A DNA stretch of 34,002 nt from Neoconidiobolus thromboides FSU 785. Taxonomy: Eukaryota > Fungi > Entomophthoromycota. A program made the translations under genes and the position numbers. Positions 4,601 through 28,635 of the stretch are shown here, piece after piece (the first letter of the stretch is position 1; every line of letters starts with the position of its first letter). The DNA lies in assembly GCA_025603075.1 (NCBI GenBank), contig MU626464.1:1-34002 (forward strand), given 5' to 3'. A model generated the notes under the pieces. That model ran no database searches. It saw nothing but the letters and a program-made list of their open reading frames with translations, and was not told where the DNA came from.

Positions 4601-5604
4601 ATTTTTAATTCGTGTAATATTTTTATTTACCACCATTTTTGAGCCTTAGTATACATCAAAGCTTTTAGTTAAATCATAATATAAATATATGTTTTACCCT
4701 GTTAATTATACAATACCAAATTTCTAGAATAAACGGATACTTTTTCATATATCATTCTATTTATTTATAGACAAAACATAAGGACCAAGTGTGAGTCTAG
4801 GAGCTCTTATATAACGGTGGTTCCTATATAAGGATTAACTATTAGGAGATTATAACGTGAACTTAATTAAACTATGGTGACTTAGTTATAATTATCTCAA
4901 CAATAATTTGGCCGAGTATCTTATTCGCAATCTTGGAACACAGATAAAAAAATACATTTAAAATTCACTTATAGTGACCCTTATTACATTCATGTATTGA
5001 TAGAAACTCTTTGGGAATAATTTTTTGCCAAACTTTTGCTGTCACTATTAACTTAATAATTACTTTGAATTGACTATAGAAAGATATTTTAGTTAGAACT
5101 CGCTATTATTGGATTTTCTATTAAAAAACCTCAGAACCAATTGTGGAAGTTTTCAACAATTTAAATAATATATGTTTAATACAGAAAACCTACTTTTACT
5201 AATAACACGAATGATTTATAATACGAGATGACTAAAACAACATAACATCTGTATATGCGAAAAGTAAATAGGCAGGTAGTTAAAAATGTATAATTATTTT
5301 ATAAATTGAATTAAATTTAACAAATTAAACCAGATTGTACTTTCGCGATTTTATAAATGGAAATACGGTAATTGTGAAACTCTAAAAAGGGATTAATAAA
5401 TTAATTAGTGTTTTTTTACGTTGTAAGAGAAAGCTAATCTATAAAGTTGAAATTTATTTTTAGAAGTATGTGGCTAGATAACCAACTAAAATAACTAGAA
5501 CTGATGAGGAAAAACTTTGGATAAATTTGGTATTTCGAGAAATTTTAAACTACATGTGACCTTGAGAATTGGCTTCTGTTAATGTACTTGGTATAAAATG
5601 TAAG

Positions 5605-5613
5605 TATATAAAG
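5605..5613 (+). promoter_or_regulatory. Candidate TATA box of HTH paralogue 1
   Basis: TATATAAAG 41-49 nt upstream of the ATG at 5654. Similarly placed TATA words occur at 11067-11074 (-), 16565-16571, 19663-19670, 31327-31336 and about 33442. The AT-rich background weakens this. Confidence 0.35.
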
Positions 5614-5653
5614 ATTTTGTTGTCCATTAATTTATCTACCAATTTTTGTTAAA

Positions 5654-6367
5654 ATGAATGCAGCTTTGAGTAAACGTAGAGTGTTGGATATCAAAACCAA
5701 AAAGAACATAATAGAAAAAAGTGAGCTTGGTTTATCTCATCAAAAGATTGCGGATATGTATAATATAGGCCGTAGTACAGTAACTAAGATCATCCAAAGA
5801 AAGCAGTATATACTTAGTAGCACAATAGCTGAATACAGATCCAGTAGAAAACGTATTCGAAAAACAGAGCATGATTTACTTGAGAAAAAATTGCTAGAAC
5901 TTTGCTTTGATTTTAACGATGGAAGATCTTTAATTAAACCTGGAGTAGATGCTGAAAAGATTATAGCTAAAGCTAATGAACTTGCGGTTGAATTTGGGTA
6001 TTGGAATTTTGTTGGTGATTTGACATGGGCTGGTAGGTTCCGTAGGAAATATAATTTAAATTTCAAAATAAGTAAGAAGAAATTAAATAATAACCCTGTT
6101 GTAACAAGCAATGTTACACCAGACATTACGAATAACCAGTCTCAAGCTAGCAGTTCTTTTGATTCCAAATCATACGATCCTACTTTAATTGGGTATAATA
6201 ATAATAATTTGTTTGATGCTGCGTATTTTAATTTTCCTTCTATTGAACCTTCCTTTTCTTCTTCCCCATTGCTTTATTCTCAACACTCACCATCGTTTGA
6301 ACATAATTTTATGTTTGATCAATATTGTCAGGAGATTTACTATCCTTTACCACATTACTATAATTAA
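5654..6367 (+). CDS. CENP-B/pogo-type double HTH DNA-binding protein without DDE domain, paralogue 1 (237 aa)
   Basis: RRVLDIKTKKNII..SHQKIADMYNIGRSTVTKI (psq/CENP-B_N-like HTH), RKRIR linker, LEKKL..IIAKANELA..W..RFRRKY (Tc5-type HTH), then a Ser/Pro/Asn/Tyr-rich tail. Confidence 0.9.
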   Translation: MNAALSKRRVLDIKTKKNIIEKSELGLSHQKIADMYNIGRSTVTKIIQRKQYILSSTIAEYRSSRKRIRKTEHDLLEKKLLELCFDFNDGRSLIKPGVDAEKIIAKANELAVEFGYWNFVGDLTWAGRFRRKYNLNFKISKKKLNNNPVVTSNVTPDITNNQSQASSSFDSKSYDPTLIGYNNNNLFDAAYFNFPSIEPSFSSSPLLYSQHSPSFEHNFMFDQYCQEIYYPLPHYYN

Positions 6368-7516
6368 TTTATATGAAATTAGATCTTTTTGTTTGTAACA
6401 TAACTATTAAAATATTGAATATTAAAACTTTGAATTTCATTTTTTATTTTGAAAGTTTTTATTTTAGCTTATAGTATCTTTTATAATATGACTATAAAGT
6501 TTGAAGAGAATATGGTAATGCATACAACAAAAGTCGTCATTTATTATCTTAATATTTATTGATTTTATTCTTTTTAAAATGTGATAGGATAAAAGTAAAT
6601 GTGAAATTTGTGAGGGAAGTGTAAAATAAATTTTATATTTAAAATCGGACATAATAAACAAAATTTAGAATTTAAATTAATCATACTAAACTTAACAAGG
6701 ATACGGGTGAGTTAAAAACCTGATTAAAATTTAAAAAAATCATCAGCTTGAGAGTTATGATTGAAGTTACAAAAATTGCGTGACTAATTTAAAAAAAAAG
6801 TAAAAAGCGACTTTTTATATATTTATGGCTAGCTTACACTTTTTATAAAATAGTAAATATGGAAAGTGGAACCTTAAGTTCAAATCAGATTTTATATGAT
6901 TGCGGTCACTTTTAATGGCATTTTTTCACTTAAAAATTAGCGATAGTATTCATTCTTTCTATTAAAATTAATTTTGTCATCATTTAATGAAACTGGTTTT
7001 CATTTTACAGCTTTCTTACTTTCAGCCTTTCTAACTTATATACTACAAAATAGTCTCTACTGGTTATTGAATGATAGGTATCAACTTGATAGTTTTTACT
7101 TAAAAATAACCCCTTAAAAGGACTTTATAGTTAAAGGTTAAACCAAAATAGCTATTGAACTATTATAAATAATGATAAGTAGATTTGTATAAGATCTTAA
7201 GGATAGTCTAGATGCTCCTTTCCAAACCAAATCTAACCATTTTATATTTTGAATACTAATTTATTAGAAAATTTTCATATTTTCCACTTTAAATTAAATA
7301 GAAAATGGTATTAAATCGCGGTCTACCCTTTTAGGACTTTTGAATAATAGACTATTTTAGGTAACTACATTAATTCTATTTAGTTATATAAATTGCAATT
7401 TTCAAAATGTTACAAAAAATTAAACTAATAGAAGCAAGTAATATTTATTCTAGAGCATTAAAATGTTAGCGCGATTTTATAAATAAACACTAAATATGGT
7501 AATTGATATTTCAAAT

Positions 7517-7539
7517 AATCCTGCTTGATAAGCAGGATT
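7517..7539. repeat. Perfect 10-bp inverted repeat with a 3-nt loop
   Basis: AATCCTGCTT-GAT-AAGCAGGATT read directly. Confidence 0.8.
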
Positions 7540-9299
7540 GAAGTAGCTACTTAATGAACATTGCGTTTTGGAACTTCACTTTACTTTTAAAAATGTCGTT
7601 TCTCATTCTCGTCATTAAAATTTTATTAGTTCCCATACTCATATCTTATTCGCTCCTCTTATTTGTATATCGCTTTATATGTCTTCCCTTTAACTTTATT
7701 TGATAATTAATAGTGAAATTCGATTCTACTATCGGTTCATCTTGAAACCATATATTTCTTAATAGCAAAATTAATTTTATTATGCTATGAAAAATAATCG
7801 TCATTTCAGTCCAAGTGTTATTGATGGAAATTGTAATACAAATGTGATTATGTTTGAAAATCGAAATCGCTGTTAATTTTATAGCTTTGTCAAACAGGAA
7901 TCTTATAATCAGCTATTTTGAATATAATGAGCTAATATTTTGACGAAATACAAATGTACAAATAGTTGTTTACAACTTTTTAAAAAGTAAAATAAAGCTT
8001 ATAGACTATTTATTATGAAATTTGCAGCAATTTTTTCCAAAATGTGTCAGCTCAATAGATTAATAATGAGTTTGTTTGTATAAAAAAGAGCAGAAAGAAG
8101 GCAAACTTAATATAAAAGCAGAAATTTGAAATTCGATGAAGCAACCTATACACAAACTCAAAATCTAAAAAAGACCTGACTATAAATTCGAGCTGTATGG
8201 ATGTGACTTTTAGGCTATAAAAAAACAAACTTGGTTTTCAAGAAATAAATTAATAATAGAAATAAAGAGAAATACGGCTTCTGATTTTATACTACAAAGC
8301 GTTAAAGTTATGCGTATAATCCATAATCTGTAAATTATAACCAAAAGTAAAGATTAAAAAGCAAGAAGTTAAAAAGGAATTTAGACGAGTGTTTAATACT
8401 AGATTCAAACAAAAAGGCAAAAGAACTATAATGCATCGTATCTAATCCAGCCCTCTTAATTCATTTTTTGAGTTTACTTCAAGGGAAATTAATTTTTTTA
8501 CACTAAAACAAAAACTAGCAAATGTAAATATCTTTGATGTTTAAGGATCCTACCAACAGCTTTTTCGTTCAGCGTTGCTTAATAATTGGAAAAATAAAGG
8601 GAGCCAAAAGATTGATTCCCAGATTAACTTTTTATAAACTAGTAAATAATTTAGGAAAATTACATACAAGTTCTACATTCCAAAAAACTCAAAAAATGAC
8701 CAAACTATATTGTATTAAAAAATGTTAATCCTAAAAGCTGAGAAATTTTTGGTCAAGAAGCAGTTTTAATAATTTCAATAGCATCATCATACTTACTATG
8801 GCTCATATTCTCTTTCCAGGTAGAGGGGTACTCTTGATAGATAAATCCCTCCTCTCTTCTCCTTTTCCTAATACAAGTAATACAGAAAATGTGAATTCCT
8901 TGCACAAAACTCTTTTGATTATGTATATCGACTAGAACCATATTCATCAATCCCTTAAATCCACTCACATCCCATCTTTAGCCTTAATGAAAACTGGTAT
9001 AGATACGCAATTTTCAGAAAGCAACTTTGATAGTTGTTGAAATCGTTAGAAATTTAGTATACAATCAGTATCTAACAAGGACCTTTTAGTAATGAATGAG
9101 AAATTAATTATTAATACATACTTTCTTAAAAGGGTAATTCACAAATTATTTTGATATTCTATCTGATCTTGACTTTACATTTTAAATTTACTTTTATATT
9201 TCTTTAGACAGGTATTGGAACAGTTTTAGGAAAAACTAGTGAGTGACATAAAAGCTTAATATTATAATTTTGTATTAGGATCTAAATGATATCAGCAGT

Positions 9300-9860
9300 A
9301 AGTCCTTCGTTAATTTATCCGAAAATAGAGTAACCAAAAGGTTTTGGCTCATTAGGTCTACAATAACAAAATGACTGAACCATTTCGGAAGAACATGTTT
9401 ATTATGGACTTTTAGTTTCATTGTAATAAATACTTGTTCTTAAACACAAATTCTAGGCCAACCTAAAAATAATCTGCTCTTAAAGCAAATCGTAAGGTTC
9501 TAAAAATCAATAATTATAGTGCATGATGAAAAATAACTAGACATAATATACCGTCTGACTGAAACTTTTTCCAACCATCTAAAGATAAATTCATAATGTC
9601 TTTTCAGGAAATCAAATAAAAAAAGTACCATTGGATTTTTATAAAGCCCATCAAAACAGTATTGTATACATGAGACAGATACACTGCCACCTCTATTGAC
9701 CTCACCTATTGACCCCATATATATTAAATACATATGGCTTTTGCTTCAACCACTACATTATTTATTTGTAGTGTAAAGAGCAATTTCAGTTTATTTGTAT
9801 ACCAGCTTTAGAGCAAATTTGATGTTATTGTCTACAACTCTTATTATGGGTATTTATAAG
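9300..9860 (-). mobile_element. Possible heavily decayed Ty3/gypsy integrase relic
   Basis: Fragments across frames appear in the expected order: VDNNIKF, GSIGEVNR (GxxExxNR-like), YLSHVYNT, LPKWFSHFVIV (PKWxGPFxIV-like). Many stops. Confidence 0.3.
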
Positions 9861-10170
9861 TTGATAGCTAAGAGATTAAATTTTAAAGTGAATCGAGTAT
9901 AGTTAAAATAGCAATTTAAATCAAAAGACCACAAATTTTTTATGTACTGGTAATATTAGTGACGAACTTGTCCGATATAATATGCAAATACATAAGAAAC
10001 AGATTTAAATCACATTAAGTCGTTGAAAAATAATACTTAAAGTAAGTTATAAATTTAAAACAGAAAAAATTGTATAGTAGCAATCTCAAAAAAACCAAAT
10101 ATGTTAATCAGTTTTTATTAGTTTTATTTTTTAATGTTTTTACAAAATAACAAAGGGAAAACCAACTCTT

Positions 10171-11007
10171 CTAATTATAATTATTATAGAGGCCTAACTC
10201 AAGAAAGGAAGTGAGCTCAGACGTTGTTTGAGGAAATTGGTTATATTCTGGGATAGAAGGCGATGATATGCAATTAAATACGTCTAAAGAGTGAATTGAA
10301 GGAGATTCTGGGTTACAGTTATCCAGAGGGAGGAAAGGGTGATCAGGACCAGCACCCCAATTTATTGAAAAGTAAGAGAAGTTGTTAGAGTTCAATGGTG
10401 GAAAGTTTGGGATATAGTAATTTGAGCTGTTCAAATCCAAAGGGAATAACTCATTATTAAAACTAGAAGGATTCTGGATTGGCGATATACTATTGCTATT
10501 TGCTGTATATACAAATGGATTATACACTATGTTACTACTTACAATATTTGTGGGCGAGTAATCTACCTCGCTAGGAACTTCTTTTTTTGTCACTTTAAAG
10601 CCAAGTTGAAATCTCTTGCGGAACTTTAATAGCCAAGTATGAGTGGCCTCAAAGTTGCCTATATCCAATTCTTTGGCGATTTGATTTGCTTTATAGATGA
10701 TGTCATGTGGTTGAATTTGAATGCTATCATTGCTCTTTTCACTGTTGAAATCATTGTACCATTCTATAACTCTTTTTTCAATTATATCAAATTGATTTAT
10801 CCTGATTCTCTTCCTGTTATCATCATATTCACCAATAGTATTATTTAAAATCACATCTTTTCGTAATAGTATTTTGGTTACTGTACTACGTCCAATATTA
10901 AAACTCTCGGCTATCTTTTGATGTGAGTATCCACTTTTACTAAGCTCAATAATATCTTTTTTGGTTTTGATGTCTAAAACACGACGTTTGGACTGATTTG
11001 GCGACAT
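10171..11007 (-). CDS. CENP-B/pogo-type double HTH DNA-binding protein without DDE domain, paralogue 2 (278 aa)
   Basis: KRRVLDIKTKKDII..SHQKIAESFNIGRSTVTKI, RKRIR linker, IEKRVIEWY..IIYKANQIA..FEATHTWLLKFRKRF, then a Ser/Pro/Asn/aromatic tail. Confidence 0.9.
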   Translation of the reverse strand: MSPNQSKRRVLDIKTKKDIIELSKSGYSHQKIAESFNIGRSTVTKILLRKDVILNNTIGEYDDNRKRIRINQFDIIEKRVIEWYNDFNSEKSNDSIQIQPHDIIYKANQIAKELDIGNFEATHTWLLKFRKRFQLGFKVTKKEVPSEVDYSPTNIVSSNIVYNPFVYTANSNSISPIQNPSSFNNELFPLDLNSSNYYIPNFPPLNSNNFSYFSINWGAGPDHPFLPLDNCNPESPSIHSLDVFNCISSPSIPEYNQFPQTTSELTSFLELGLYNNYN

Positions 11008-11284
11008 AATAATTTATATTTAGTTAGTAATCTTTTGGATTTTGTTTTTTCGGGATTACTTCTCACCTTTTATACATTTTGAAATTAATCTATCTATTCC
11101 AAAAACGAAATCTATTCTCTTATTCGCGAGCCTCCATCTCGAGTTCCCTTTTATGAATATAAAAACCTTTGCTTACTATATTTATAAAAGTTCTTTAACA
11201 TTGTAAGAACAGTTTAAATCAAACTCCGTAATTTTAAGGTATAGTCAGGCTTGAAATTTTATGTTGATTCTATAAACAGTATAT

Positions 11285-11375
11285 GAAGATGTCTTTTTTA
11301 TTTCAATATTTAGTTTGCTGTTTTCAGTTTTACATTGTATAAATATATACAAGTAATGAACCAAAAGTCATTTCT
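11285..11375 (+). mobile_element. MITE type B, copy 2
   Basis: ATAT-GAAGATGTCTTTTTTATTTCA...AAGTAATGAACCAAAAGTCATTTCT-ATAT. Homologous to 1603-1691; its right end resembles type A (AAGTAATGAAGCCAAAA). Confidence 0.6.
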
Positions 11376-11775
11376 ATATTCTTTCTTCTATATTATTTAT
11401 TTGTGCTAACCAAAAGGTTCGCTTTTGTACATTTTTCTATTTAGCTTATTTTTTAGGTACCTGATTAATTTCTACTATGTAGTGCTAAAATTTTTCCAAT
11501 TTTGATTACCTTTTTAATCATACATTCTATATAATGCTTAATTGTTGGCGTTCTTTTAAGGTAAATATCATACTATAAATGGTACAAAGAACATACCTAG
11601 AACAATTAATATTTTTTATATATTAATTGTGTTTCAAAAATCAACAATGGTTTAATATAATCTTAAATAAACTTATCATTTATTTACTACATAAACTCAC
11701 ATTATAAGATATGGGTTTTTCAATCAAACAACTAAATCACAATAAAGCGTTACTTATAAATAGAATTATACATAT

Positions 11776-11883
11776 GAGGATGTATTTTTATGTTTAATAA
11801 TTTTACCAATAATTTTACTAATAATTTTTCCACTCAAATAGCGCTTAAAAATCGAAAAAGCAATGAAACTAAAAAACATTCTG
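11776..11883 (+). mobile_element. MITE type A, copy 2 (internal 12-nt tandem duplication)
   Basis: ATAT-GAGGATGTATTTTTATG...CCACTCAAATAGCGCTTAAAAAT...AAAAAACATTCTG-ATAT; contains AATTTTACCAAT AATTTTACTAAT in tandem. Confidence 0.85.
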
Positions 11884-14199
11884 ATATGTTTAAGCTAGTT
11901 TTTGTTTCTAATAGCCATATCTACTTCAAAGTTATTATGCGGTTTACTTAAAAATTTTAATGATTAGTTTAGTTTTAAAGTTTTATACAAATTCTTTTGA
12001 GCAATTATGTGATAAAAACCACTGCTTCAAATTGTCCTACCCTTTTAGTTTATTATTGGAAGCCAACCTTATCTTGTCAGGCTAACCACTGTTGACCAAA
12101 TATATACCTTTATTCGGAATTAGTAACTTAAAATATATATTCTTTAAGTCGGAACAATTATCCTATGACAAACGCCTTAAAAGATGCTTATTATTGATAA
12201 CACTCCTTTTTTTCGCTTTTTCATATTTTATCAAAGTATTCATTAAATATATACTTTATTATAATTATACATATTTGTACCTTTATCTAGATTTGATGAT
12301 TTATTGGTTTGTTCATCTATTAAAAACTTAATGTGAACCTCATTATTTTTTATTCAAGTAAATATCCCACGTGTTTGCATATATATATTTTTTGTATGTG
12401 AATTTTATATAAAATATCATATATGATTTCCTCATAATTTCCTTTTATAAAAGCTTTGTAAAAGTTCTATTGTACAAATCACATTAAATAGTCTATTCAT
12501 ACGTAATGTCCGAAAACTTCATGCACATAAATAACACAAATGTTGCCACGGACACTAGCTTCTCTATATAATTCAACTTTTTTCTTCGTTTTATTTAGCA
12601 AACCGTCAATGCTTTTAAACGTAAATCGTGTTTATATCCACTAAGCTTTAAAAGTAAAGCAATATTATTTTAGATGAGCTTTGTTACTATTTATGAATAT
12701 AAGCAAGGACTGAACGTTTGTTACAAAGATTGTTTGTCTATTTTTATAAACTATAGCTATAGGCAAATATTCACATTATTAAAAAAAAGAGTAAAAGTAA
12801 CTTTATCGAATTCGAAACAAGTACTTGGGATAAATTTCTTAATTCAAAAATCTTATCTTAATAATATCAACTCTTCACTAAGTTCAAATCTTTACACTAT
12901 AAGAAGTAATCAGAGCAATTGACAAAATTATGACTTTATTGAAATGTGAAGAAGCATATACTTTATTTGGTAAAATTTTTCTATTCTATACTGAATTAAC
13001 TAATAACTTTGCCAAGTTACTCTGGCACCTTTGTGGTGTATGTAGTACAAAATTGCTATATTTTAGAATTTTAAAGCTTCAAGTGAAAAATATCACTAAT
13101 ATTTTAATTCCTGTTTAAAATATAACGAATCAATTAGCTCTATTGGAGATTACTTAATTTAGATAAATAACAGTGATTTATAATTCTATTACAATAATTG
13201 TTTGTAGAACTAGTGTGCAGATTGTTATTTAATTTTACTGCTCAAAATTTAAGTACTTATAAGGGTGCAGTAACTAAGATGACTGCAAGGAAAAAACAAA
13301 GCTTGGCAAAATACAGCAATTACAATTTGATTTTGTGCCTCATTAAATTGAACTCACTATACTTTTACCTTAAATTTAGCATTCTCTGACTTCAAAATGT
13401 GACGAAAGTTAAGCTAGACGCTAATTTAAAAAATCAATTTAAGATAACTTGGTACAAAGAACTTAATTTACTGAATCACGAAATCAAATTGTAATTACTC
13501 TACTTGATCTTAATAATTTTTATTTGACTTTCGTTATAAATTATTAGTTCATTTTGGTTTATAATGACCAAGGATAAAACGTTGGTTGTTTTTTATTGAT
13601 ACAAAGCAGCTCTACTCAAAAGATCAAAAAATAATGCTATAACAAGGAAACCTTTATAGCTTGTTTTTCGATATAATCAAAATTTTGTTTGATTGGGATT
13701 TATTTTTATGAAAAATAGTGGCAACTTCCACTGTTGCAACCTATTACCTTTACATAAAAAAGTTCTGATGATTTCTTCACTACCTGTATCATTACTTACA
13801 GAAACACCTAATATAAGCTAAACAGCTGATCTCAGGTGATGGTTGACTATCAAAGCTTTATCTAAACCTTCAATCAAGTTTAAAATAACAAAAGGGAGTA
13901 TCTGATCAACTCAAAATTTGTTGGTAAAAATAATACTTGTTTATCTTTACTATTAATTCTAATCCTTTATGCAATAGTTTGTTTAATGTCATATTACTGC
14001 TTTTTCTGTTTATTTTTGATTTAGTTACTGATAGTTTAATATCGTATATCTTTAATTTAATTACGTATTCGCTTTAACTTTGATATTAGTAAAAATAATT
14101 TATTTGATATTTTTAAGCACAGATAAATTTACAATTATTATTTTCAAATTTGGCATAAATGTAAACTATACTACGATGGTTAAAAATATAACTCAATGG

Positions 14200-14590
14200 C
14201 TTAATTGACATTCAAATCAAAAGTACTCAGTAGTATAATAATAAAATACCTCCACTTATCTGAAATGACCATGAGTAAGCACAGGTTGCTATTAAATAAA
14301 CAGTCTAATTTTGTGTACCATAACATTAGCCATTGCCCAATAACATCAAAAGATAAAATATTACCTTTTAAAGACAAATGTAATACTTTCAAAGCTCAAG
14401 AAAAGCACTATTCATTTATTAATAAACTTATTTCATACTAAAGTCTATACAGAAGTTTACCTCGAGTTTACATTTTCAACCCATAATTAGTTCCAGTTTT
14501 CTAAGCCAAAGTGTAGCTTAGGAAACTTGCAGCATTTTAAGCAAGCAGCCTTTAATTTTGGCCTAAAACTGAGAACCATTTCCATCAAAC
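14200..14590 (-). mobile_element. Decayed LTR-retrotransposon (Ty3/gypsy-like) integrase core relic
   Basis: Minus strand reads DGNGSQF*AKIKGCLLKMLQVS*AT, resembling the SDNGxQFT..LLKMLxV segment of the integrase core; downstream sequence is stop-riddled. Confidence 0.4.
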
Positions 14591-14858
14591 TTGAAATAGT
14601 CAAATCCTATACTAAAAACCAAAAATGAAAAACGAAAAATTCCGGGTAAAAATTATATACTTTAAAGTTACTAAAAAATATTTATTATAGCAAAATAAGC
14701 ATATCATACAACTTTAAAAACTTTTTCAGTGAAAAGCCGCATATCAAGTATCCTCCACTCAGGTTTATTTGTGATATAAATGTACTGTCGCTACTTTCTA
14801 TAAATAATTAATACTAGTAGGATGTAAATTTCTAAGATGATCTATAAATCTAAAATAT

Positions 14859-14957
14859 GGAGATGTTTTTTTTGATTTCATCACTTTTTCCATTTTTTAA
14901 GCGCTATTTGAGTGGAAAAATTGTTAATAAATTCTTAAACAAAAAAATACATCCCCC
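14859..14957 (-). mobile_element. MITE type A, copy 3
   Basis: ATAT-GGAGATGTTTTTTTTG...AAGCGCTATTTGAGTGGAAAAATT...AAAAATACATCCCCC-ATAT. Confidence 0.85.
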
Positions 14958-15010
14958 ATATGTTATAAGAACTATTTTCCACATTTATTCATTATTGAAT
15001 CAATTAATAT

Positions 15011-15033
15011 AGAGGTGCTTTTCAAGCACTTCT
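15011..15033. repeat. 10-bp inverted repeat (one G-T pair) with a 3-nt loop
   Basis: AGAGGTGCTT-TTC-AAGCACTTCT read directly. Confidence 0.7.
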
Positions 15034-15317
15034 AATTAATAACCATTTCTCTAGTATCACAAAGGTAGCAAAAAACTATAATAGCTATGTAATCATTATA
15101 AAGCTTTATAGCTATGTCGCTTAGATATACTCTAAATAATGGATTGTACATTAAATATATTAAAGATTTGAATTTTAAATTTTGTTTTGAATAATAAGCT
15201 ACCTTTGGATTCTAGAATCATATCATTTCAATGTATTTTCTTTTTCTTCATTCATTGTTTATTTTTAATCTTTTTTCTATTAAAAATACTCTTTTTGAAG
15301 CAATTAAACTATCATAT

Positions 15318-15414
15318 GATGATGTGTTTTTTTGTTTAAGGATTTTACTAGCGATTATTCTACTCAAATAGTGCTCAAAAATGAAAAAGGTGATGAAACT
15401 AAAAAATATCCTCC
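15318..15414 (+). mobile_element. MITE type A, copy 4
   Basis: ATAT-GATGATGTGTTTTTTTGTTTAAGGATTTTACTA...CTACTCAAATAGTGCTCAAAAAT...AAAAAATATCCTCC. Confidence 0.8.
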
Positions 15415-16626
15415 TATTTTTCTTATATGTTAAATCCTAGTATTTCATTTGTAGTATTTATATTTTAAATAGTAGGGTTTAATTACTAACTTTACATTTG
15501 TAGTAAAATAATATTTAGTGCTCCATCTAATAAAAACATACTTTGATAATAGTGCTCATATGTTTTTATCGGAACAGTAGCTGTAAAAAATGCAATAATA
15601 TTATCTTGATGTAGTTTTAAATGGTAGAAATCAACCTTGATACGGTTTGATTTATAATGCTTGGCATTATTAAGCTTCATGAATAGAGTAATCCAGTCAT
15701 GGGGGACATGGTATATGATTAAGGATTATAACTAAAAATGGTAGACTAATACATCTATTTAATTTAAATAAAATAGTAACTAGGATTTAATTATTCTTAG
15801 TTATTACACAATATTTTTTAGGAATAACAATAATTGTTTGTAAAAGTTTTAGAACTAAAACATAAACTCTTAAACATCACTTAGGTATATAATAGCCTAA
15901 ATTCATAGGAGCTATTGATATTTACTTAAACCTTCATGTTTTTTAATTATCAGACTTATAAATCGTGTTTACTACTATATTTGAACTAAAATTAAGCTTA
16001 AGCTGATTCATGAAATTGATGTTCCGATTTGATATTACTTATTCTTAGATTTTATCAATGAAGTAAATCCTTTATTTAGTAGTAGAACATTAAACAAAAG
16101 GAATAAGAATATATAGGTTAAATCATCTAAGTGTAACTGATAAAAGTTCCACTTTCTTTCTAAACAATTAGTATAAATTTAGACTTTATTTGGAACTATC
16201 CGCCGCTGTAATGTTATTTGGCGATAAATCTTGTATTTGATCGCATTTTGCTAACTGCTATCAAGCAAGTCTATATTCAAATTTGCTTCAAATTGTTATA
16301 GTAAAGGCAAGTTTTAAGTTACAATTTTTACCTAATATTATATTTAGGGTTTGAAGTCTTTATTATACTCAAGATTCAAAATAAAAGTAAAACACTGGCT
16401 ATATATAACAAGAATGACAATTTATAATTGCCTATAAATAATTTTGAGTTTTTAATTTATTTTTGTGTGAGGAAAATTACAAATTAAATCGCTATATATG
16501 GAAAATGCATTCTTTGAATGTTTACAATGTAGTCACAATTTCAAATGTGGTATAAATAGTCAGATATAAAATGGAGGTGGAAATAGTAAAAGTTTAGAAA
16601 AAAATTATTTAAATTATAACTATATT

Positions 16627-17355
16627 ATGGCTATCATGGAAACTAAGGGTAAAAGGGCAACATTAGATTTGAAAACTAAAAGAAAAATAATAGAAATCGC
16701 CGAGCTTGGTTATTCTCACCAAAAGATTGCAGATAAATTCAACATTGGGCGTAGCACAGTAACAAAAATATTGTTAAAGAAGGATGTCCTATTAAACACA
16801 ATTGAATCAGAAATTGATTTGAGTAGAAAAAGGTTAAGGCGTACTGAGCTTAATGGTCTGGAAAATAAGTTGGCAACCTGGTACTTGGAAGCGAATATAA
16901 ATAAATCCCATATAGTAGATCTTCAGGCATTAAAATCTCAAGCTATCGCCCTTGCTAAAGAAATGGGAATTAATAATTTCAATTTCGATAGCGCTTGGAT
17001 CCAGAAATTTTGTACTAAATTCCGTTTACCTACTCAAGACCAAATTAGAATTGAGCCTGTAGTTAAAAGTAATGTACCAGAATTTCTTTTTGATCTTAGT
17101 TCCAACCATCTCGATGTGGACTTAATGGGTGATAACAAACATAGTCCAAATACCGGTAATTTTAGCCTAAGGGCAGACGGGAGCCTTAGCCCAATTGCCA
17201 CTAGCATAAATTTAGCTCCTGATAACAGCCTTGGTTCGAATTGTTATTATGCTAACTCACTAGGTCGCTTATATTCTCCATATAGCGATTCACCTGTAAA
17301 TGAAATAACGCTATTTCAATACCAACAATACACAAGTAATACGCACTATTTTTAA
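16627..17355 (+). CDS. CENP-B/pogo-type double HTH DNA-binding protein without DDE domain, paralogue 3 (242 aa)
   Basis: KRATLDLKTKRKII..SHQKIADKFNIGRSTVTKI, RKRLR linker, LENKLATWY..LKSQAIALAKEMGINNF..WIQKFCTKF, KSNVPE, then a Ser/Pro-rich tail. Confidence 0.9.
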   Translation: MAIMETKGKRATLDLKTKRKIIEIAELGYSHQKIADKFNIGRSTVTKILLKKDVLLNTIESEIDLSRKRLRRTELNGLENKLATWYLEANINKSHIVDLQALKSQAIALAKEMGINNFNFDSAWIQKFCTKFRLPTQDQIRIEPVVKSNVPEFLFDLSSNHLDVDLMGDNKHSPNTGNFSLRADGSLSPIATSINLAPDNSLGSNCYYANSLGRLYSPYSDSPVNEITLFQYQQYTSNTHYF

Positions 17356-17539
17356 GTTTAATTAATTTTTAATAAAAAGTACATTATATCCTTTTACATA
17401 GTAGTGTTTATCTTATTTATTACATTTACATCTAGTCTATATTATGTCCAATTTGTTTTTTTGTTTATTCATTAAAAACTAAATCTCCAAAGCGCTTTAT
17501 TATAAGATCAAAATATATTCTTGATTTAGTTAGCTTAAT

Positions 17540-18070
17540 GACACAACCAGCGATAGATAACTTCTGAGAGAATGGCTTCATCTAATGCTTTTCCGTCTTC
17601 AAGAGGGGTTGAAAGCCATGAATGGTACCATTTATTTATATTTTTAATAGGCTATTCATTAATTTGTGAGGTTGCGAAAACTAAAGCCTAAAAGATGGAG
17701 ACCTGGAAGTCAAAATAGAAAGCGATAAATCTTTTGTATATGGATCGAATACTAATTGGAAAACCTAAACCTTTAAATAGAAAGGGCAAACTTGGTAATG
17801 TTGTACCTACAGCGAAGGAGCCTACCAATAGTTTAGTATAATCATAATAAAAGTGCAATTAATTCGTTACGGGTGGTCAAATGCTAAAGACTAAGGAGAG
17901 AAGTAACCAAATGACAGAGAGAATTGATAGTAAGTGGTATATAGCAAGAAATTTTATCTAGGAGTTGTTAATATTTAATGATTATAGTCTGTGATACAAA
18001 ATCTAAGCATGATAGGCTTTTATAAGGATGTTGACGATTTAAGGTTTAAGCCTTGACGAGGGAAAAAGAG
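17540..18070 (-). mobile_element. Decayed non-LTR (LINE, L1/Tx1-like) reverse transcriptase relic
   Basis: Minus-strand fragments in canonical order: PRQG (GxRQG motif), FKGLGFPI (KYLGxP motif), INKWYHSWLS..GKAL..AILSEVIYR (post-RT segment). Multiple stops and frameshifts. Confidence 0.45.
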
Positions 18071-18385
18071 TCAAAAAAGCAAGAGGAAAGTGATTGTAAC
18101 ATTAAGCTGATTCATCTCTTATTTTTTTATATTTCTGAGCAAGTTTTTTAAAATATTGGCTATTGTTTTTAAAAGTAGACATTAGTTACAATAGTTTTTT
18201 AAATAATTGTTTGTGTTTGAGCTATGCTTGAATTATGTCTGGTAGCTTTAATCGAGGAAAACCGTAAACTATTACATTGCTAAGATAACACTTATTTGAT
18301 TTTTTTAAAATTGTTACTTAACATTAAGTAGCAATTTATTAATAAAAAATTTTATCAGAAATTTCCAGTTAAGTCCGTTTTTAAA

Positions 18386-18457
18386 TTTATTACTTTTTTC
18401 ATCACTTATTTCATCATTCTTTTTATTACTTTTTTTATCACTTATTATAACATCTAA
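18386..18457. repeat. Degenerate 12-bp minisatellite with 36-bp higher-order period
   Basis: TTTATTACTTTT TTCATCACTTAT TTCATCATTCTT TTTATTACTTTT TTTATCACTTAT TATAACATCTAA; unit 1 equals unit 4, and unit 2 differs from unit 5 by one base. Confidence 0.6.
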
Positions 18458-19707
18458 TTATTTATTCAATAAAAAACAACAACCCAAGAGGTAAGCAAAA
18501 GGAGAAAGGAGACTGATACTTTTAGGCTTATAGTTTATAATCTTTGTTTTTAATATATGTTTATTTAGTTTACAAGTTGCACTGTTACGCTATGGCAAGG
18601 AATAGGTATATATTAATTTATGATTGGGAATCTAAAATAGAATGTTATTAAATTGAGGTGACTATATCGTTAACTTTTATGATTTGATATCGCCTTTTAA
18701 ATAATACATCACTTCAGCTGTTAAAAAATATACTCGTTTATATTAGTCTTGCGTTACATCATACATATTTGTTGTATTATAACAATAGTATCAAATTATT
18801 GCTCTATATACCTAAATTAGTTATTTAGTTTAGTGGAAAAAGTCCATATCAAGAAATGTTATTGAATTAGAGATATTATTAGAAATCCAGCTACTAAATT
18901 GCTACTATAGCGAGGAGGCAATAATGGAAGGTTGGTTTATTTAATACCTCGTTTTATATAAAATTGCGAAAGTATGTTCTATTTTTTTTTTGACTAAATG
19001 AAAGTCTAGTTATTAAATTTAAATTTATAGATTGAGAAATAAGGTGAGAACTCAAATTCATTATTCTAAGTTAGCATTTTGATTAATGCATGATATAAAG
19101 AAGTAGAAACATTCGAAAGCGTATTCCTGTTGAAATGATACCTGTATATAATATTATAGCAATAGATTTATAATAAAAAATAAATGAGCTTGTTTACTTT
19201 ATTTGTTTAGATATTTATTTAAATAACAATTTTACAATTCATATTACAAAATCTAAATTTACAAAGATATTTGAGGTATATAATAACCGATCATTCTAGT
19301 TTATAAATCTTTTCTTTTCGATACCCAATTCAATCACATTTTGGACCTAGAACTATTTTTAAATTGAGTATTATATGGTATAGTGACTACTATATAGTAC
19401 AGTTACTCAATATTGTAATGAAAAATAATATAACAATTTTGTAAATAAAACATTAATTTTAAGCAACTTAGTTATTATGGAAATAACATTGTCAAATAAT
19501 AATAAGCTGTCTATAAATTACCCTATAAATAAGTATAACCTGCGCCACAATAAGAAAGGCTAACAAAGTTTTTATCACCACAAATAAAAACAAGAATAAA
19601 AAATTAATAGCTTCCCATATACAGTGGTCATTAGTTAAGAACATTAGAATAACAAAAAATAATATATAAACAGCCTTAAATTTCGTATAGCTAGTATAAA
19701 TCATTAA

Positions 19708-20352
19708 ATGTTTCAATTTGAGAATAAAAAAAAAAGACGTATTTTAGACATTGCTACCAAAAAAAATATTTTGGAAGCATCCAAGTTAGGCTATTCACAC
19801 CAAAAGATTGCTGATATGTTTGAAGTAGGTAGAAGCACAGTGACTAAGTTACTATTGAGAAAGGATATAGTATCAAAAGAAGTAGAGCAATCACCGAAAG
19901 ACAGTGAGATGAGTAATACTGAAATTTTCGAAGCTAAATTATTAAAATGGTGTAAAAGTGAAGTTAAAAAAGGAAGTAGAATAGTAAATATAGATTTAAT
20001 AAACAAAGCTAGCTTAATAGCAAAAAACATGAAATTTTATGATGTTGAAATCAATTCAACTTGGGTTACTGATTTTTGTGGAAAATTCCAACTTGATATT
20101 GAAAGTGAAACTACGTCAATTTTTGAGATAAAAAGTAATGTACCAGAGTATATAATAACCCCATTGATACACAACAGAATTCTCACTAACCAATTGCTTT
20201 ATCTAAATCACTCTTGTCCTCCATATACTGATAACTATCATTATAATACTTTTATTCAACAAAATAGCTCACCATTGGGTTCGTTTATTAGTCCTTATAT
20301 CAGCCCTGTTTCCACATTTTCTTCTCAATTTGAATATTTTAATCCTTATTAG
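19708..20352 (+). CDS. CENP-B/pogo-type double HTH DNA-binding protein without DDE domain, paralogue 4 (214 aa)
   Basis: KRRILDIATKKNIL..SHQKIADMFEVGRSTVTKL, FEAKLLKWC..LINKASLIA..WVTDFCGKF, KSNVPE, then a Ser/Pro/Tyr-rich tail; the RKR linker is absent. Confidence 0.88.
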   Translation: MFQFENKKKRRILDIATKKNILEASKLGYSHQKIADMFEVGRSTVTKLLLRKDIVSKEVEQSPKDSEMSNTEIFEAKLLKWCKSEVKKGSRIVNIDLINKASLIAKNMKFYDVEINSTWVTDFCGKFQLDIESETTSIFEIKSNVPEYIITPLIHNRILTNQLLYLNHSCPPYTDNYHYNTFIQQNSSPLGSFISPYISPVSTFSSQFEYFNPY

Positions 20353-20418
20353 TTTTATTTTATCTTTCCTTAATAATTTTCCAAATAAATCAATTTTTCA
20401 GTAATTGAATCATGTTAT

Positions 20419-20512
20419 GAGGGTATTTTTTTGGTTTTATCACTTTTTCCATTTTTAAGCGCTATTTGAGTGGAAAAATTATTAATGAAATCCTTGAATA
20501 AAAAGCATTCCC
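20419..20512 (-). mobile_element. MITE type A, copy 5
   Basis: GAGGGTATTTTTTTGG...AAGCGCTATTTGAGTGGAAAAATT...AAAAAGCATTCCC; flanks TTAT/ATAC. Confidence 0.8.
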
Positions 20513-20520
20513 ATACTAAA

Positions 20521-20780
20521 ATGTCATCTCAGCCATCAAAGATACACGAAAATATGTATTCCCCTATCGCATCTGTTAAGGAAAACGTAGGCTCTGTTAC
20601 TGATAATCACTCTCTTCAAGCAAAGGATACTGGTCAAAAGGCTGAAGGTAACGACGTTTAACACCAAGATCCTAAATCAAAGGGTTATGTTGAAGGCACC
20701 ACAAATAATTTTGCTGGAAGTATTAAGATAACATTGGTTCCATTCCAGATGATAATGCCAAAATAGAATCTAATGTTTAA
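20521..20780 (+). pseudogene. Hmp1/CsbD-like small hydrophilic stress protein pseudogene
   Basis: MSSQPSKIHENMYSPIASVKENVGSVTDNHSLQAKDTGQKAEGNDV*HQDPKSKGYVEGTTNNFAGSIK, then a one-base frameshift to DNIGSI. The PS..G....G.VKE.VG...G...L and KGYxEGT pattern is typical of the fungal Hmp1/CsbD family (recognised from memory). Premature TAA at 20659-20661. Confidence 0.65.
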
Positions 20781-20786
20781 GCATTT

Positions 20787-20884
20787 GGGGCTGTTTTTTC
20801 GGCTTCATTACTTTTTCCATCTTTTAAGCATTATTTGAGTGGAAAGATTGTTAGTAAAATTCTTAAACATAAAAATACATCCCC
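20787..20884 (-). mobile_element. MITE type A, copy 6
   Basis: ATTT-GGGGCTGTTTTTTCGG...ATTTGAGTGGAAAG...AAAAATACATCCCC-ATTT, with an exact non-palindromic 4-bp direct repeat. Confidence 0.88.
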
Positions 20885-21056
20885 ATTTATTAGTTAAATA
20901 AATTGTTTTTTTGTAAAAAATGGAATTTATAGAAGCTTGAATATTGTAATAGCATTGTAGTAGTTTAGTTTATATTAATATAGTTTATTAGGGGATATCG
21001 TCATAAAAAACCCAAGATAATTTTTTTAATAACATTGATTTTTAATATTATATCAT

Positions 21057-23297
21057 CTAATGATTTTTACTACGACATTTATGACGGGTGGTAGTAGCAG
21101 TAACACTGGTAACTGGGATAAAGGTATATGTGCCAGTTTGTACTGATGAGCCACTGGTAACTGGTACAAGAGTATAAGTGCCACTTGGAACGCTATAACT
21201 TGTATATGTGGATGATTGACTATCAGTCACTGGGTAAGATCCAGTTTGAGTATATGAGTTAGTGGAGGAGTTAATTAAGCTAGAGGATATACTAGATATA
21301 CTAGAAGATGATCGGGTAGAAGTAGTAGAGCTAGATTCAGTTACTGAATAAGTCTCAGTCTCGATAGTGGTATTATAAGTACTTGAAGAAGTAGATTTAG
21401 TACTAGTAGAACAAGAAGTAGACGATGAGTTGATAGGAGTGGTTACTGGATAAGTCGAAGTTTTAGAAGTAATGGAACAAGGGGTGGTAGATGCACCAGT
21501 AGATGATTCAGATTGAGTGGAAGTTACAGTTGATGATTGAGATACAGAGGTAGATGTGGTTGTAGATGTTTCAGATCCAGAGGTAGTAGTAGCAGTCGAA
21601 ATTTCAGATCCGGAAGTAGAGGTTTCTGATTGAGTAGAAGTTATAGTTGAAGTAGTAGAAGTTTCCTCTTCTTTCTTAACAATTTTAATTCTACCATCAG
21701 TGTAAGGAGATACAGGAGTATGCTTTTTAACATAATCACTAACAATGATGTCGGTAGCCTCGAGGGTAGCAAAATCAGTGATAGGTGGAGCAATAAAGTT
21801 ATCTCCACCAGTAGCAATAAAATCTAAAGTTGTACAGGTGTATACTTTTTGCAAATCTAATTTGACATAGGTTGCTGTTTTAGCTTTACGATCCAAAATA
21901 TCAACTGAGACTAAACGAGATTGAGCTGGTGCAGTTGGATCATAAGTAAATTTCATACCACCAATTTGAATAAATGAAGTGACAGGGCGGCTATTTACTT
22001 TATTTACTTTAGATACAATGGCCTCTAACATGTTCCAAATCTGGTCCCCTTTTAATTTTATATCAACAATAGCATTACCGAATGGGAATACAGTTAAAAC
22101 ATCAGATACTTTAATGTCACCTTTAGTGATACCAGCACGAATACCACCAGCATTAATAAAGGATACATCTGAGTTTGGTCTTTTTTCTAAAATAATATCG
22201 GAAACAAAAGAACCAAGAGAGCATTCCTTTGTTTGACAACTAGCTTGATCAAAATCATCTGTTGCTACGCCAAGTACAGTCTTACCAAAAGCATCAAAAG
22301 GTTCTCTCCATTCTTGAGCTTGTTTATTAGCTTCTTCATTTAATGGAACTAAGGAGTTTAATTCAATTGGGAAACCATCGATTTTATTTAAATAACCATC
22401 TTCATTAAACTTAATATCAACATGTCCTAAGAATCGACTCCAACAATAAGCTTGAACAATGTAGGTATCTTTGCCATCTAAATTTTTAACTGAAGTTGGA
22501 TAAATACCAACTGAGTTTGGAGCATTTGTTACGTTATTTAATGGGGAGGCAAGGTAAGAATGAGAATGACCACCAACAATAAGTGATAACCCTTTAGTTT
22601 TTGATGCTAATTCTTGATCTTCTTTATAACCATTATGAGAAACAGCAATTACTCTTTTATAACCCATTTTTTTAACTTCATCAATAGTTTCTTGTAAAGT
22701 AATAATAGGATCAGATACTTTGAGCAATTTACCAAGGTTCGAAATAGAAGGAGCAGTGTAAGTGATATAACCAACAACAGCTAAATTGTATTTTGGGAAT
22801 AATTGATATTTTTTAATTAAGCTTGAAAGTTGAGGATGTTGAGAGGCATCGATATTGGAGGATACTAACGGAAATGTAAAATTTTGAGCTACTCTAGCTA
22901 AATTATCTGGTCCATTATCAAACTCATGGTTACCAATAGTCATAACGTCATATTTTAGATAATTCATAGCTCTTGCTGTAATGTCTCCTTTATAATAAGT
23001 ATAGTACATAGTACCTTGGAACTCATCCCCACCATCTAATAATAAATTATTAGGGTGTTTTTCACGTAATTGATCAATGGCTGTTTTTAATCTTGCTAAA
23101 CCACCATAACACTGTTTGTTTTCAATTTGAGCCTTAGTACAATCCGTTCCATACTTATTACTTTGGTCGTATCTTGAGTGGACATCATTAGTATGTAAAA
23201 TAGTCAAATCGTAATCTGAATCTTCTCTTCTTATTATACTACCCTCAGTGCAAAAGGTTAAGAGCAATAAAACCAAACTACTACTTTGAAATAACAT
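21057..23297 (-). CDS. Secreted 5'-nucleotidase (calcineurin-like metallophosphoesterase plus 5'-NT C-terminal domain) with a Ser/Thr-rich tail (746 aa)
   Basis: Signal-peptide-like N-terminus; LTILHTNDVHSR, LLLDGGDEFQGT, YDVMTIGNHEFDNG, SHNG, GGHSH, INAGGIRAGI motifs; about 200-aa S/T tail. Confidence 0.93.
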   Translation of the reverse strand: MLFQSSSLVLLLLTFCTEGSIIRREDSDYDLTILHTNDVHSRYDQSNKYGTDCTKAQIENKQCYGGLARLKTAIDQLREKHPNNLLLDGGDEFQGTMYYTYYKGDITARAMNYLKYDVMTIGNHEFDNGPDNLARVAQNFTFPLVSSNIDASQHPQLSSLIKKYQLFPKYNLAVVGYITYTAPSISNLGKLLKVSDPIITLQETIDEVKKMGYKRVIAVSHNGYKEDQELASKTKGLSLIVGGHSHSYLASPLNNVTNAPNSVGIYPTSVKNLDGKDTYIVQAYCWSRFLGHVDIKFNEDGYLNKIDGFPIELNSLVPLNEEANKQAQEWREPFDAFGKTVLGVATDDFDQASCQTKECSLGSFVSDIILEKRPNSDVSFINAGGIRAGITKGDIKVSDVLTVFPFGNAIVDIKLKGDQIWNMLEAIVSKVNKVNSRPVTSFIQIGGMKFTYDPTAPAQSRLVSVDILDRKAKTATYVKLDLQKVYTCTTLDFIATGGDNFIAPPITDFATLEATDIIVSDYVKKHTPVSPYTDGRIKIVKKEEETSTTSTITSTQSETSTSGSEISTATTTSGSETSTTTSTSVSQSSTVTSTQSESSTGASTTPCSITSKTSTYPVTTPINSSSTSCSTSTKSTSSSTYNTTIETETYSVTESSSTTSTRSSSSISSISSSLINSSTNSYTQTGSYPVTDSQSSTYTSYSVPSGTYTLVPVTSGSSVQTGTYTFIPVTSVTATTTRHKCRSKNH

Positions 23298-24023
23298 CTA
23301 TCTATTTTAACAATTAATTAAAAATTAACTTTATTTTAATAAAAGTTAAAGCAGTTAACAGTTTTTGTTAACCTATTTATATTAATTTGTACTCAAATTT
23401 CATTATTAGTTTCCAGCCTCGATTTAGAAAGAACATATTAAATTGTGATATTCTTTATTGTTTATTTATAAATTAAATTTTCATTCGAAATCTTTAAACT
23501 AAAAAACCAATCATTTATTATCTGATTACCATATGCGATAAACTACAAAATACAAGTAAAATATTTACTATGGTTCACTTTTAATGTTGTCTTTTATCTC
23601 TTAAGTAATATATAAAGAAATGATAATAAATTAATTTTCTTTTTTATAAACTTAAAGTTACTTATTAAATATTAAAATCCGTGCTATTACCATTCATTAA
23701 AGACTAGTTTATTATTTAACTGGGTTTGCCATTTGTTTATACAATTTAATTAAAAATTATTTTAGATACTCATATAGTCAACCTTAGATTAGGTCTAAAG
23801 TACAAAATACCGATAAGGTTTGGTAACCATTAGTCTATTGAATCCTGGCTACTATTGACAATAAACTATAATGTATGTTCAAGTTAATAGTTCTATCAAC
23901 CCTTTTATTAAAAATTAAAAACTATAATAAAAATGCCCAAAATTAATTCGTCAAAAAATCTTCTTTAGTAATGAATATGAGAACACGTGGTATAATGGTA
24001 AGTAAAAACAAAAAAATTAAATA

Positions 24024-24106
24024 TGATCAGGATGGGATTCGAACCCACGCCTCCGAAGAGACCGCGGCCTTAACACGGCGCCTTAGACCAACTCGGCCAC
24101 CTGATC
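24024..24106 (-). tRNA. tRNA-Leu(AAG), intronless
   Basis: GATCAGGTGGCCGAGTTGGTCTAAGGCGCCGTGTTAAGGCCGCGGTCTCTTCGGAGGCGTGGGTTCGAATCCCATCCTGATCA. Acceptor stem GATCAGG/CCTGATC, anticodon loop TTAAGGC (AAG at 24069-24071), long variable arm, GGTTCGAATCC T-loop. Confidence 0.95.
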
Positions 24107-24917: not shown

Positions 24918-25787
24918 ATGAAACGAAAAGACCAACAATATAGAAAAGAAAATGAAAAAGGATATAAGAGTAAAGAGGGAGACATTACACTAACACAAGA
25001 AGAAGAGTATAAACAATACCAAAAAAAGCTAAGAGAAGAAAAAAAAAGAGAAAAACAACTTGATGAACAAGCTAAATTATTGGAATTAGAATTGGAAGCT
25101 TTGTTAAACGAAGAAGTAGAAGAATCTGTAAAAGAAGTTGAAAATGTAAAAGAAGAAATTATTATTGAAGAAAAAAAAGAAGTCAAATATAAAAGATATT
25201 CTCAGTTTGCATTACCTGGTATGATTAAAGTTGAAAAAGGTTGGGTTTATCCAGATGAGATTGTAACTGAAAGAAATAAAACTTTTATTATGAACAAAGT
25301 TGATGAGATTCCATTGAAAAAAGAACCTGAACCTGAAGTCAAACAAGAATTAAAAGAAGAAGAAAGAAAGAAAGAAGAAGAAATTACAGAAGAGATAAAA
25401 GTAGAACCAGTAAAAATTAAGGTTAAAGAAAACATTGGTTTAAAGTTACTAAGAAAACAAGGTTGGAAGGAAGGTACTGGCTTAGGTAAAAATAATACTG
25501 GTATTATTGAACCAATAACTAGGTACCTATAATATAATATATATAAGTACAATAATGTATAATATTTATTTTTAGTCAAGAAAAGAAAACATTAAGTTCA
25601 GCTCCAGTTAATGAACGAGAAGAATATGAAATTTTATTGGAAAATGGAAAGATTGAGGTTGATTATGAAAGTTATCGTTTAAAACAAATGGAAAAATATA
25701 AACAACGGTATACAGTAAAGTTTAATTTCTACTATTATAGAACTATATATTTTAATACTAATATTTATTTAGAGTCATCAAGAATAA
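24918..25787 (+). CDS. G-patch domain protein, probably 3 exons (24918-25522, 25576-about 25714, 25773-25787)
   Basis: NIGLKLLRKQGWKEGTGLGKNNTGIIEPI G-patch motif. Intron 25523-25575 (53 nt) restores an open frame; the last intron has a TACTAAT branch-like site but its donor is ambiguous. Confidence 0.8.
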
Positions 25788-28139: not shown

Positions 28140-28635
28140 TGAATTAAACATACTGGCTTGAAAGTAAGTGGGTTTAAAGTTTAAATTAGATCTTTGAAAT
28201 AGACACCCAAGTATCAAAGTAATCAATGATTAGTAAAAATAAGTTCAATAATCTAGGTGATTAATATTTAGTAATATGAGCTTTCACACGACTATTTATA
28301 ACTATTCTTTAATAAATTACTCTTTCAAAAATATATAGCTGTTAACGATTGTTTTATGTTTCCTTCTAATTTGATTTAAAAATAGACTAGGCATTTTCAG
28401 TTTATATTTGTTAAACCTATTTACAATAATTTCTTAATTCTTATATTGAGGTGATAAATCAGAAATGCTCAATCTATTTTTAAATCAAATTAGAAGGAAA
28501 CATAAAACATTTGAAGTTAAACAATTGTATCCATATTTTTATAGTTGCTTTTTTTTTTACAAATGAGAGATCACTTCAATAAATTGATACAATTTAAAAA
28601 TTCTTGGATTAACCAAAAAAAATTGATTAACAAAT

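Follow-up and report, generated by a model that had tools for sequence, protein, structure and literature searches.

Our analysis of the 34,002-bp contig MU626464.1 of Neoconidiobolus thromboides FSU 785 (27% GC), hereafter the window, concerns four intact paralogous genes, A to D, that lie between positions 5654 and 20352. Each joins the two-helix-turn-helix (HTH) DNA-binding module known from CENP-B and the pogo transposases to an unrelated, disordered tail; all four are transcribed, and differences between strains point to purifying selection. On balance we take them to be functional host genes which encode sequence-specific DNA-binding regulators of transcription, probably activators. This upholds the core of a first-pass annotation of the same DNA, which had described transposase-derived, DDE-less two-HTH genes under selection as candidate transcription factors. 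That annotation had also named what would speak against it, namely near-identical dispersed copies flanked by terminal inverted repeats (TIRs), a dN/dS near 1, a spliced DDE exon downstream or a lack of expression, and we found none of these. The genes and their parts are as follows.

5654..6367, forward strand: gene A, open reading frame (ORF) of 237 aa
5654-6073, forward strand: gene A DNA-binding module (about residues 1-140)
6098-6121, forward strand: gene A VVTSNV motif
6122-6364, forward strand: gene A disordered tail
10171..11007, reverse strand: gene B, ORF of 278 aa
10588-11007, reverse strand: gene B DNA-binding module
10522-10545, reverse strand: gene B IVSSNI motif
10174-10521, reverse strand: gene B tail
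16627..17355, forward strand: gene C, ORF of 242 aa
16627-17046, forward strand: gene C DNA-binding module
17059-17082, forward strand: gene C VVKSNV motif
17083-17352, forward strand: gene C tail
19708..20352, forward strand: gene D, ORF of 214 aa
20125-20148, forward strand: gene D EIKSNV motif
20149-20349, forward strand: gene D tail

The ORF scan thus returned all four genes at the positions and within the size range (214-278 aa) first assigned to them. They are also, as had been claimed, the only intact genes across the 14.7 kb: no independent ORF of at least 90 aa occurs between them, the longest spacer ORF measuring 82 aa and looking random, and the sole longer other ORF (128 aa, 5740-6126, reverse strand) is antisense to gene A and nested within it. 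With 27% GC and a stop probability of 0.085 per codon, chance alone would produce about 1.5e-5 open stretches of at least 214 codons here. Full-length comparison of the four proteins gives pairwise identities of 36-44%, local alignment 31-51%; gene D is the most divergent and lacks the basic RKR linker. Gene B is probably unannotated in N. thromboides, because it is absent from the protein collection, with no hit of its own in word-indexed searches. In gene C, the first ATG is changed to ATA (G16629A) in strains X3 and X5 and an in-frame Met4 remains, so that the real start at 16636 is probably this Met4 in those strains and perhaps also in the window strain.

The case for DNA-binding proteins begins with domain content and fold. 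Pfam matches CENP-B_N, an HTH of the psq type, followed by HTH_Tnp_Tc5 in all four genes, with uneven strength against the curated cut-offs: genes B and C exceed them for both domains, gene A for CENP-B_N only, and gene D for neither. In gene A, CENP-B_N (PF04218) is found at E 3.6e-7 and HTH_Tnp_Tc5 (PF03221) weakly, in gene B the latter at E 3.1e-9 and the former at E 6e-7. Despite its sub-cut-off Pfam scores, gene D (as P0008) matches the family profile at E 6.5e-66. The family profile, built from ten sequences, aligns with residues 4-129 of CENP-B(1-129) (PDB 1HLV), across both HTHs, at E 4.5e-15. The AlphaFold model of gene B contains seven helices, arranged as two three-helix bundles (H13-24/H29-36/H40-48 and H74-90/H100-113/H123-133) plus a short H50-55; its predicted local distance difference test score (pLDDT) exceeds 90 for most of the first 135 residues, drops to 75-79 in the linker and near residue 95, and lies below 50 in the tail. 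When this model was submitted to Foldseek, 1hlv_A was the top and only significant match (E 7e-7, target TM-score 0.68), followed by weaker listings that include the Abp1 structure 1iuf and the CENP-B_N domain of Dan, 2elh. Pfam, the profile comparison and the model of gene B agree, therefore, on the two-HTH module that the first-pass annotation had seen in each gene.

Conservation is distributed very unevenly along the proteins. Mean pairwise identity among the four genes is 0.67 in HTH1, 0.27 in the linker, 0.32 in HTH2 and 0.24 in the tail, and all four window genes have the same HTH1 recognition helix, GRSTVTK, which hardly varies in the remaining family. Five to 15 residues past the DNA-binding domain (DBD), nearly all family members carry a (V/I)xSN(V/I) motif, often followed by P-E/D, which is specific to the family and lies beyond the transposase-derived part. 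The tails are disordered and rich in Ser, Asn, Pro, Leu, Tyr and Phe, with Tyr/Phe-rich tips; they hold 0-3 Lys+Arg, 2-9 Asp+Glu and 12-18 Phe/Tyr/Trp and are net acidic, and the DBDs are basic, with 25-29 Lys+Arg per 140 residues. Judged by composition only, a basic DBD with an acidic, aromatic and disordered tail would be an activator-like pattern. The Pfam scan detected no repressor or chromo-type domain.

The predicted pogo-type origin of the module is well founded, because the family profile also matches the N-termini of full-length proteins with the architecture CENP-B_N, HTH_Tnp_Tc5 and DDE_1. What marks a transposon is nevertheless missing. The Pfam scan of the four genes gave no DDE_1 domain, and tblastn with the catalytic parts of eight pogo transposases revealed no DDE remnant (best E 1.3 for the window, 0.7-0.8 for the sister clusters described below), which leaves no sign of a spliced catalytic exon downstream. 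Likewise, the repeat search found no inverted repeats that bracket any of the four genes, so that both absences recorded in the first-pass annotation, of the DDE domain and of flanking TIRs, are borne out. The sole DNA repeat common to the genes is the 107 nt that code for HTH1 (67-76% identity), their flanks being unshared; apart from this stretch, all strong repeats in the window are copies of a miniature inverted-repeat transposable element (MITE) of about 110 bp. Depth in DNA run X3 is about 45x over the genes, which are on single contigs, and equals that of other unique contigs; MITE positions reach a summed contig depth of 1e4-1e5 in the DNA runs. With single-copy depth and paralogues that are 31-51% identical, the genes do not resemble near-identical dispersed copies. 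No pseudogene relics of lost copies were detected in the window spacers at E < 0.5 (tblastn).

All four genes are represented in two sets of RNA contigs, from RNA run X2, which shows zero differences from the window sequence, and from a second RNA study, X7. Gene A is covered in X2 by a contig at 5892-6342 (depth 105, 0 differences), with further contigs in X7; gene B by a contig at 10192-10962 (depth 7.6, 0 differences) in X2 and at depth 46-52 in X7; gene C by contigs at 16613-17341 (depth 8.6, 0 differences) in X2 and 16642-17371 (2 differences) in X7; and gene D by contigs at 19399-19763 (depth 2.5) and 20009-20455 (depth 11.4) in X2 and 19732-19973 in X7. For comparison, an adjoining 5'-nucleotidase gene reaches about 220 in X2. 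The coverage in X7 includes alleles of a diverged haplotype. Since the long spacers, for example 6600-10000, give zero in the RNA runs and are evenly covered by the DNA runs, the signal reflects RNA and not contaminating DNA. The RNA contigs are moreover collinear with the genome, and hence the covered gene parts are without introns, as had been proposed from the sequence. Within the C-D spacer, two short stretches, 18000-18200 and about 17400-17500, have RNA contig depths of 110 and about 240 in X2, with the remaining spacer silent; their DNA depth is slightly above single copy, they have neither an Rfam match nor an ORF, and they may represent a small repeated or transcribed element.

A comparison of strains indicates that the open frames are maintained by selection, as the first-pass annotation had argued. 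In X3, the cluster is found again on contigs 10.4 and 5.1 kb long, with 99.4% identity to the window. Against a null of 66% non-synonymous changes (transitions), 10 of the 12 coding differences between X3 and the window are synonymous (p = 6e-4); the two others are V149I, a conservative change in the gene A motif, and the loss of the first ATG of gene C. When all listed variants are counted, four of 15 are non-synonymous (p = 0.002). Gene A on its own has four synonymous and three non-synonymous strain single-nucleotide polymorphisms (SNPs; N37D, V149I and P233A). The use of dN/dS between paralogues was abandoned, as dS is saturated or undefined in every HTH pair, and strain polymorphism was used in its place; its mostly synonymous character is at odds with a dN/dS near 1.

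The position of the cluster is likewise kept across strains, in X3 and in a haplotype of X5 and X7 that is about 10% diverged. This second haplotype differs from the window by about 4-4.5% in DBD-coding sequence, 6-10% in the tails and 10-12% plus indels in the spacers. The DNA-binding module is thus clearly constrained and the tails are much less so. X5 (5400-11399 and 16000-20450) contains two haplotypes of the cluster at about half depth each, about 1% and about 10% from the window, as might be expected if the sample were mixed, heterokaryotic or a heterozygous diploid; both alleles of the X5/X7 haplotype pair are transcribed in X7.

How far does the family extend? The first-pass annotation had described a cluster of four genes; clustered they are, but not isolated, for N. 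thromboides has at least 21 members of this family, arranged in at least three clusters and as singletons. Word-indexed protein searches yielded N. thromboides proteins only, the sole match outside the window in the first of them being a protein of strain FSU 785 from contig MU626427.1, and they missed most paralogues, so that an exhaustive profile search was needed. Across 1.84 billion proteins, 27 matches fell below 1e-30; they comprise N. thromboides proteins, a single protein from an unidentified public run, and long proteins from animals. The latter, from scorpion, oyster and shrimp (600-2300 aa), were rejected as close relatives, as their scores sum several HTH modules. Among the matches listed from this search, none is a close relative in another named fungus; as far as present evidence goes, only N. 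thromboides has the family. Six of its genes (349, 254, 246, 242, 224 and 217 aa) are intact on MU626427.1, which has one relic as well, a broken copy. The third cluster, on MU626404.1, consists of six intact genes, of which one appears to lack an annotation; five further members are dispersed. Two of these features are placed as follows.

L005 14330-15325 on MU626404.1, reverse strand: apparently unannotated 331-aa member of the third cluster
26748-27205 of the rebuilt MU626427.1 contig (about L002 12526-12983): broken N3-like pseudogene between two intact members

The N3-like pseudogene is evidence of gene death in the arrays.

The 5'-nucleotidase gene (21057..23297, reverse strand; Pfam Metallophos and 5_nucleotid_C) serves as a synteny anchor, for a paralogue of it adjoins the six-gene cluster on MU626427.1, its orientation unchanged relative to the window. 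The gene and its flank (21031-23426) share 88% DNA identity with L001 14082-16451 on MU626427.1; dN is 0.046 and dS 0.35-0.47, at conserved residues the two copies share 82% of their codons, and a 30-nt indel lies in the Ser/Thr stalk. Both copies are found in X2, the window copy about 30-fold more strongly, with the substitutions and the 30-nt deletion of the MU626427.1 version matched. That the two blocks are alleles was considered and rejected, each being at single-copy depth in X3; as both versions are also expressed in X2, MU626427.1 and the window are paralogous blocks of one genome. Further block-to-block alignments are limited to a CsbD-like remnant (78%), a 378-bp piece (86.5%) and MITEs.

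The arrays themselves tell of a deeper history. In HTH pairs within or between clusters, synonymous sites are saturated and 33-61% of codons are identical, and the family duplications are consequently old. No gene of the window cluster has a one-to-one orthologue on MU626427.1, cross pairs looking as old as within-cluster pairs. In a DBD tree, the four window genes group with N2, N4, N5 and N6 of the sister cluster and one dispersed gene (support 95/92), and the third cluster is separate, a topology consistent with descent of both 5'-nucleotidase-linked arrays from a common source. The saturated HTH arrays disagree in age with the 5'-nucleotidase flank and its dS of 0.35-0.47. We prefer a scenario in which an old, larger array was duplicated along with the block and each copy then lost different contiguous members; as an alternative, the flank may have been homogenised by gene conversion. 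The earlier description of a lineage-specific, tandemly expanded family of transcription factors therefore stands as regards the lineage-specific expansion; the family occupies several loci, and the role of its members as transcription factors is something we infer.

In functional terms, we imagine that the basic two-HTH module would, like CENP-B(1-129), bind DNA at a bipartite site, with the near-invariant HTH1 recognition helix (GRSTVTKI) reading a half-site common to the family and the variable HTH2 and linker giving each paralogue a separate preference. The tail and its motif may then bring in the transcription machinery, or else a partner common to these proteins. Several points weigh against this picture. 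DNA binding in vivo, the target genes and an activating role are what we infer; among sequences upstream of 15 family genes, no common k-mers were found beyond a MITE-derived word. The SNP sample is small, and in genes C and D it is incomplete; expression is poorly gauged by contig depth, and the RNA contigs give neither strand nor transcript ends. The tail of gene C changes nearly as fast as the spacers, so that some of every protein may be under almost no constraint. Finally, Abp1, Cbh1 and Cbh2, other characterised pogo-derived proteins of fungi, act in heterochromatin and in the control of transposable elements rather than as classical activators.

This last point leads to the most serious alternative, which we nonetheless judge unlikely: that the proteins bind transposon ends or repeats, such as the MITE of about 110 bp, and silence them or compete with a transposase, after the models of the fission-yeast CENP-B homologues at Tf elements and the vertebrate clusters of KRAB zinc fingers. 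The module does stem from a transposase, whose native target is the TIR, and the clustered arrays, the variable HTH2 and the one pseudogene relic suggest birth-and-death evolution. The MITE is hyper-abundant and lies between and beside the genes; it has GGGGATGT... TIRs and possibly TA target-site duplications, the inverted ends of its copies read GGGGATGTATTTTT..., and it occurs also in RNA contigs and in many copies on the sister contig. Its copies in the window are listed here.

1109-1228: MITE copy
11771-11891: MITE copy
14845-14971: MITE copy
15303-15421: MITE copy
20403-20523: MITE copy
20776-20918: MITE copy
28591-28735: MITE copy
29029-29125: MITE copy
30199-30351: MITE copy
30399-30487: MITE copy

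However, nothing ties the proteins to this MITE, whose ends are not known to resemble pogo TIRs, and the tails resemble activation rather than repressor domains, in line with the Pfam result given above. The surveillance array for transposable elements that the first-pass annotation had entertained has accordingly gained no direct support. A broader version, which we hold to be less likely still, would see the clusters as a diversifying repertoire of transposase-derived readers of transposon and MITE ends, a fungal counterpart of the KRAB zinc-finger arrays. HTH1 would then be a fixed anchor and HTH2 the evolving specificity element, with members being born and lost in the arrays and the arrays being duplicated along with a chromosomal block.

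Far more remote is a self/non-self, mating or developmental switch locus kept as strongly diverged haplotypes. The second haplotype in X5 and X7, about 4-12% diverged and with both alleles expressed, could be read in this way, as could the sister cluster, which is without one-to-one orthologues although its 5'-nucleotidase flank is 88% identical. But the window-type and MU626427.1-type loci are each single-copy in X3, which makes them paralogous loci and not alleles; a family in at least three clusters plus singletons is a poor fit to one switch locus; the window contains no known mating-type gene; and the X5 haplotype pair may be ordinary variation. The mating or lifestyle switch proposed at first thus lacks direct support, and a multi-locus family with old duplications speaks otherwise. 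The remaining idea, that the genes are relics of internally deleted pogo elements whose N-terminal frame stayed open by luck and which have no host function, agrees with their transposase-like domain content and the MITEs close by, but is effectively refuted by ORFs of 214-278 codons that are only about 1e-5 likely by chance, by single-copy depth without common flanking DNA, TIRs or a DDE remnant, by transcription of the genes amid silent spacers, by the synonymous excess between strains and by a conserved family-specific motif outside the transposase-derived part.

Beyond the cluster, a CsbD-like remnant at 20470-20736 (Pfam CsbD, E 0.003) is flanked by two MITE copies; the corresponding position beside the sister 5'-nucleotidase has an annotated gene of 88 aa, with which the remnant aligns at 78%. 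The other neighbours are the following.

24024-24106: tRNA-Leu(AAG), the only match of the Rfam and tRNA scans
24918-25532: exon of a G-patch protein
31382-32473: M28 peptidase

How does a family of putative DNA-binding regulators of this kind compare with known systems? In animals, domestication of the DBD of pogo or Tc1-mariner elements on its own is known from Drosophila cag, CG4570 and the dan/danr pair of the pipsqueak type and from vertebrate CENPBD1; these genes keep the N-terminal HTH, are devoid of DDE and TIRs, are single-copy and under purifying selection, and are treated as regulators of transcription (PMC13548663; PMC7386202; PMC10027918). Domesticated genes have been recognised by an intact ORF, the lack of transposon hallmarks, a conserved position, purifying selection and expression (PMC13548663), and the window genes show intact ORFs at a conserved position, purifying selection in a small sample, and expression. 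The animal examples are, however, single genes or pairs, old and spread across many species, whereas here one fungal lineage has at least 21 paralogues, in three or more clusters and as singletons, which, unlike the animal genes, possess their own (V/I)xSN(V/I) motif and aromatic, acidic tails.

With CENP-B, S. pombe Abp1/Cbh1/Cbh2 and S. cerevisiae Pdc2, the window genes share the pogo origin and the bipartite module of CENP-B_N and Tc5 HTH. The fungal pogo domestications described so far keep a DDE remnant (PMC4231638, PMC5391189). CENP-B, too, retains the DDE_1-derived domain and has a C-terminal dimerisation domain, whereas the window genes end after the DBD with unrelated disordered tails. 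The autonomous pogo, Tigger and Fot transposases are homologous over the N-terminal 140 residues, with the same order of domains, but differ in possessing DDE_1 and TIRs and in forming near-identical multiple copies. We found no literature that links this family, or Neoconidiobolus, with CENP-B or pogo.

The emergence of new regulators from the pogo DBD alone is thus known in animals, and the characterised fungal cases, Abp1/Cbh and Pdc2, are single genes with a catalytic remnant. What differs here is an early-diverging fungus with a DBD-only derivative that has grown to at least 21 expressed genes in several arrays, with its own motif and activation-like tails. As one HTH is frozen and the other free, the family offers a compact natural series for the diversification of two-HTH specificity, and an aphid-pathogenic fungus could owe to it a sizeable share, so far overlooked, of its means of gene regulation or genome defence.

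Similar expansions have occurred elsewhere: in plant FAR1/FHY3, derived from Mutator, and in the KRAB zinc-finger arrays, a DNA-binding family gave rise to numerous paralogues whose recognition parts diverge. The Neoconidiobolus family, for which function is predicted, differs from both in source superfamily, fold and host kingdom.

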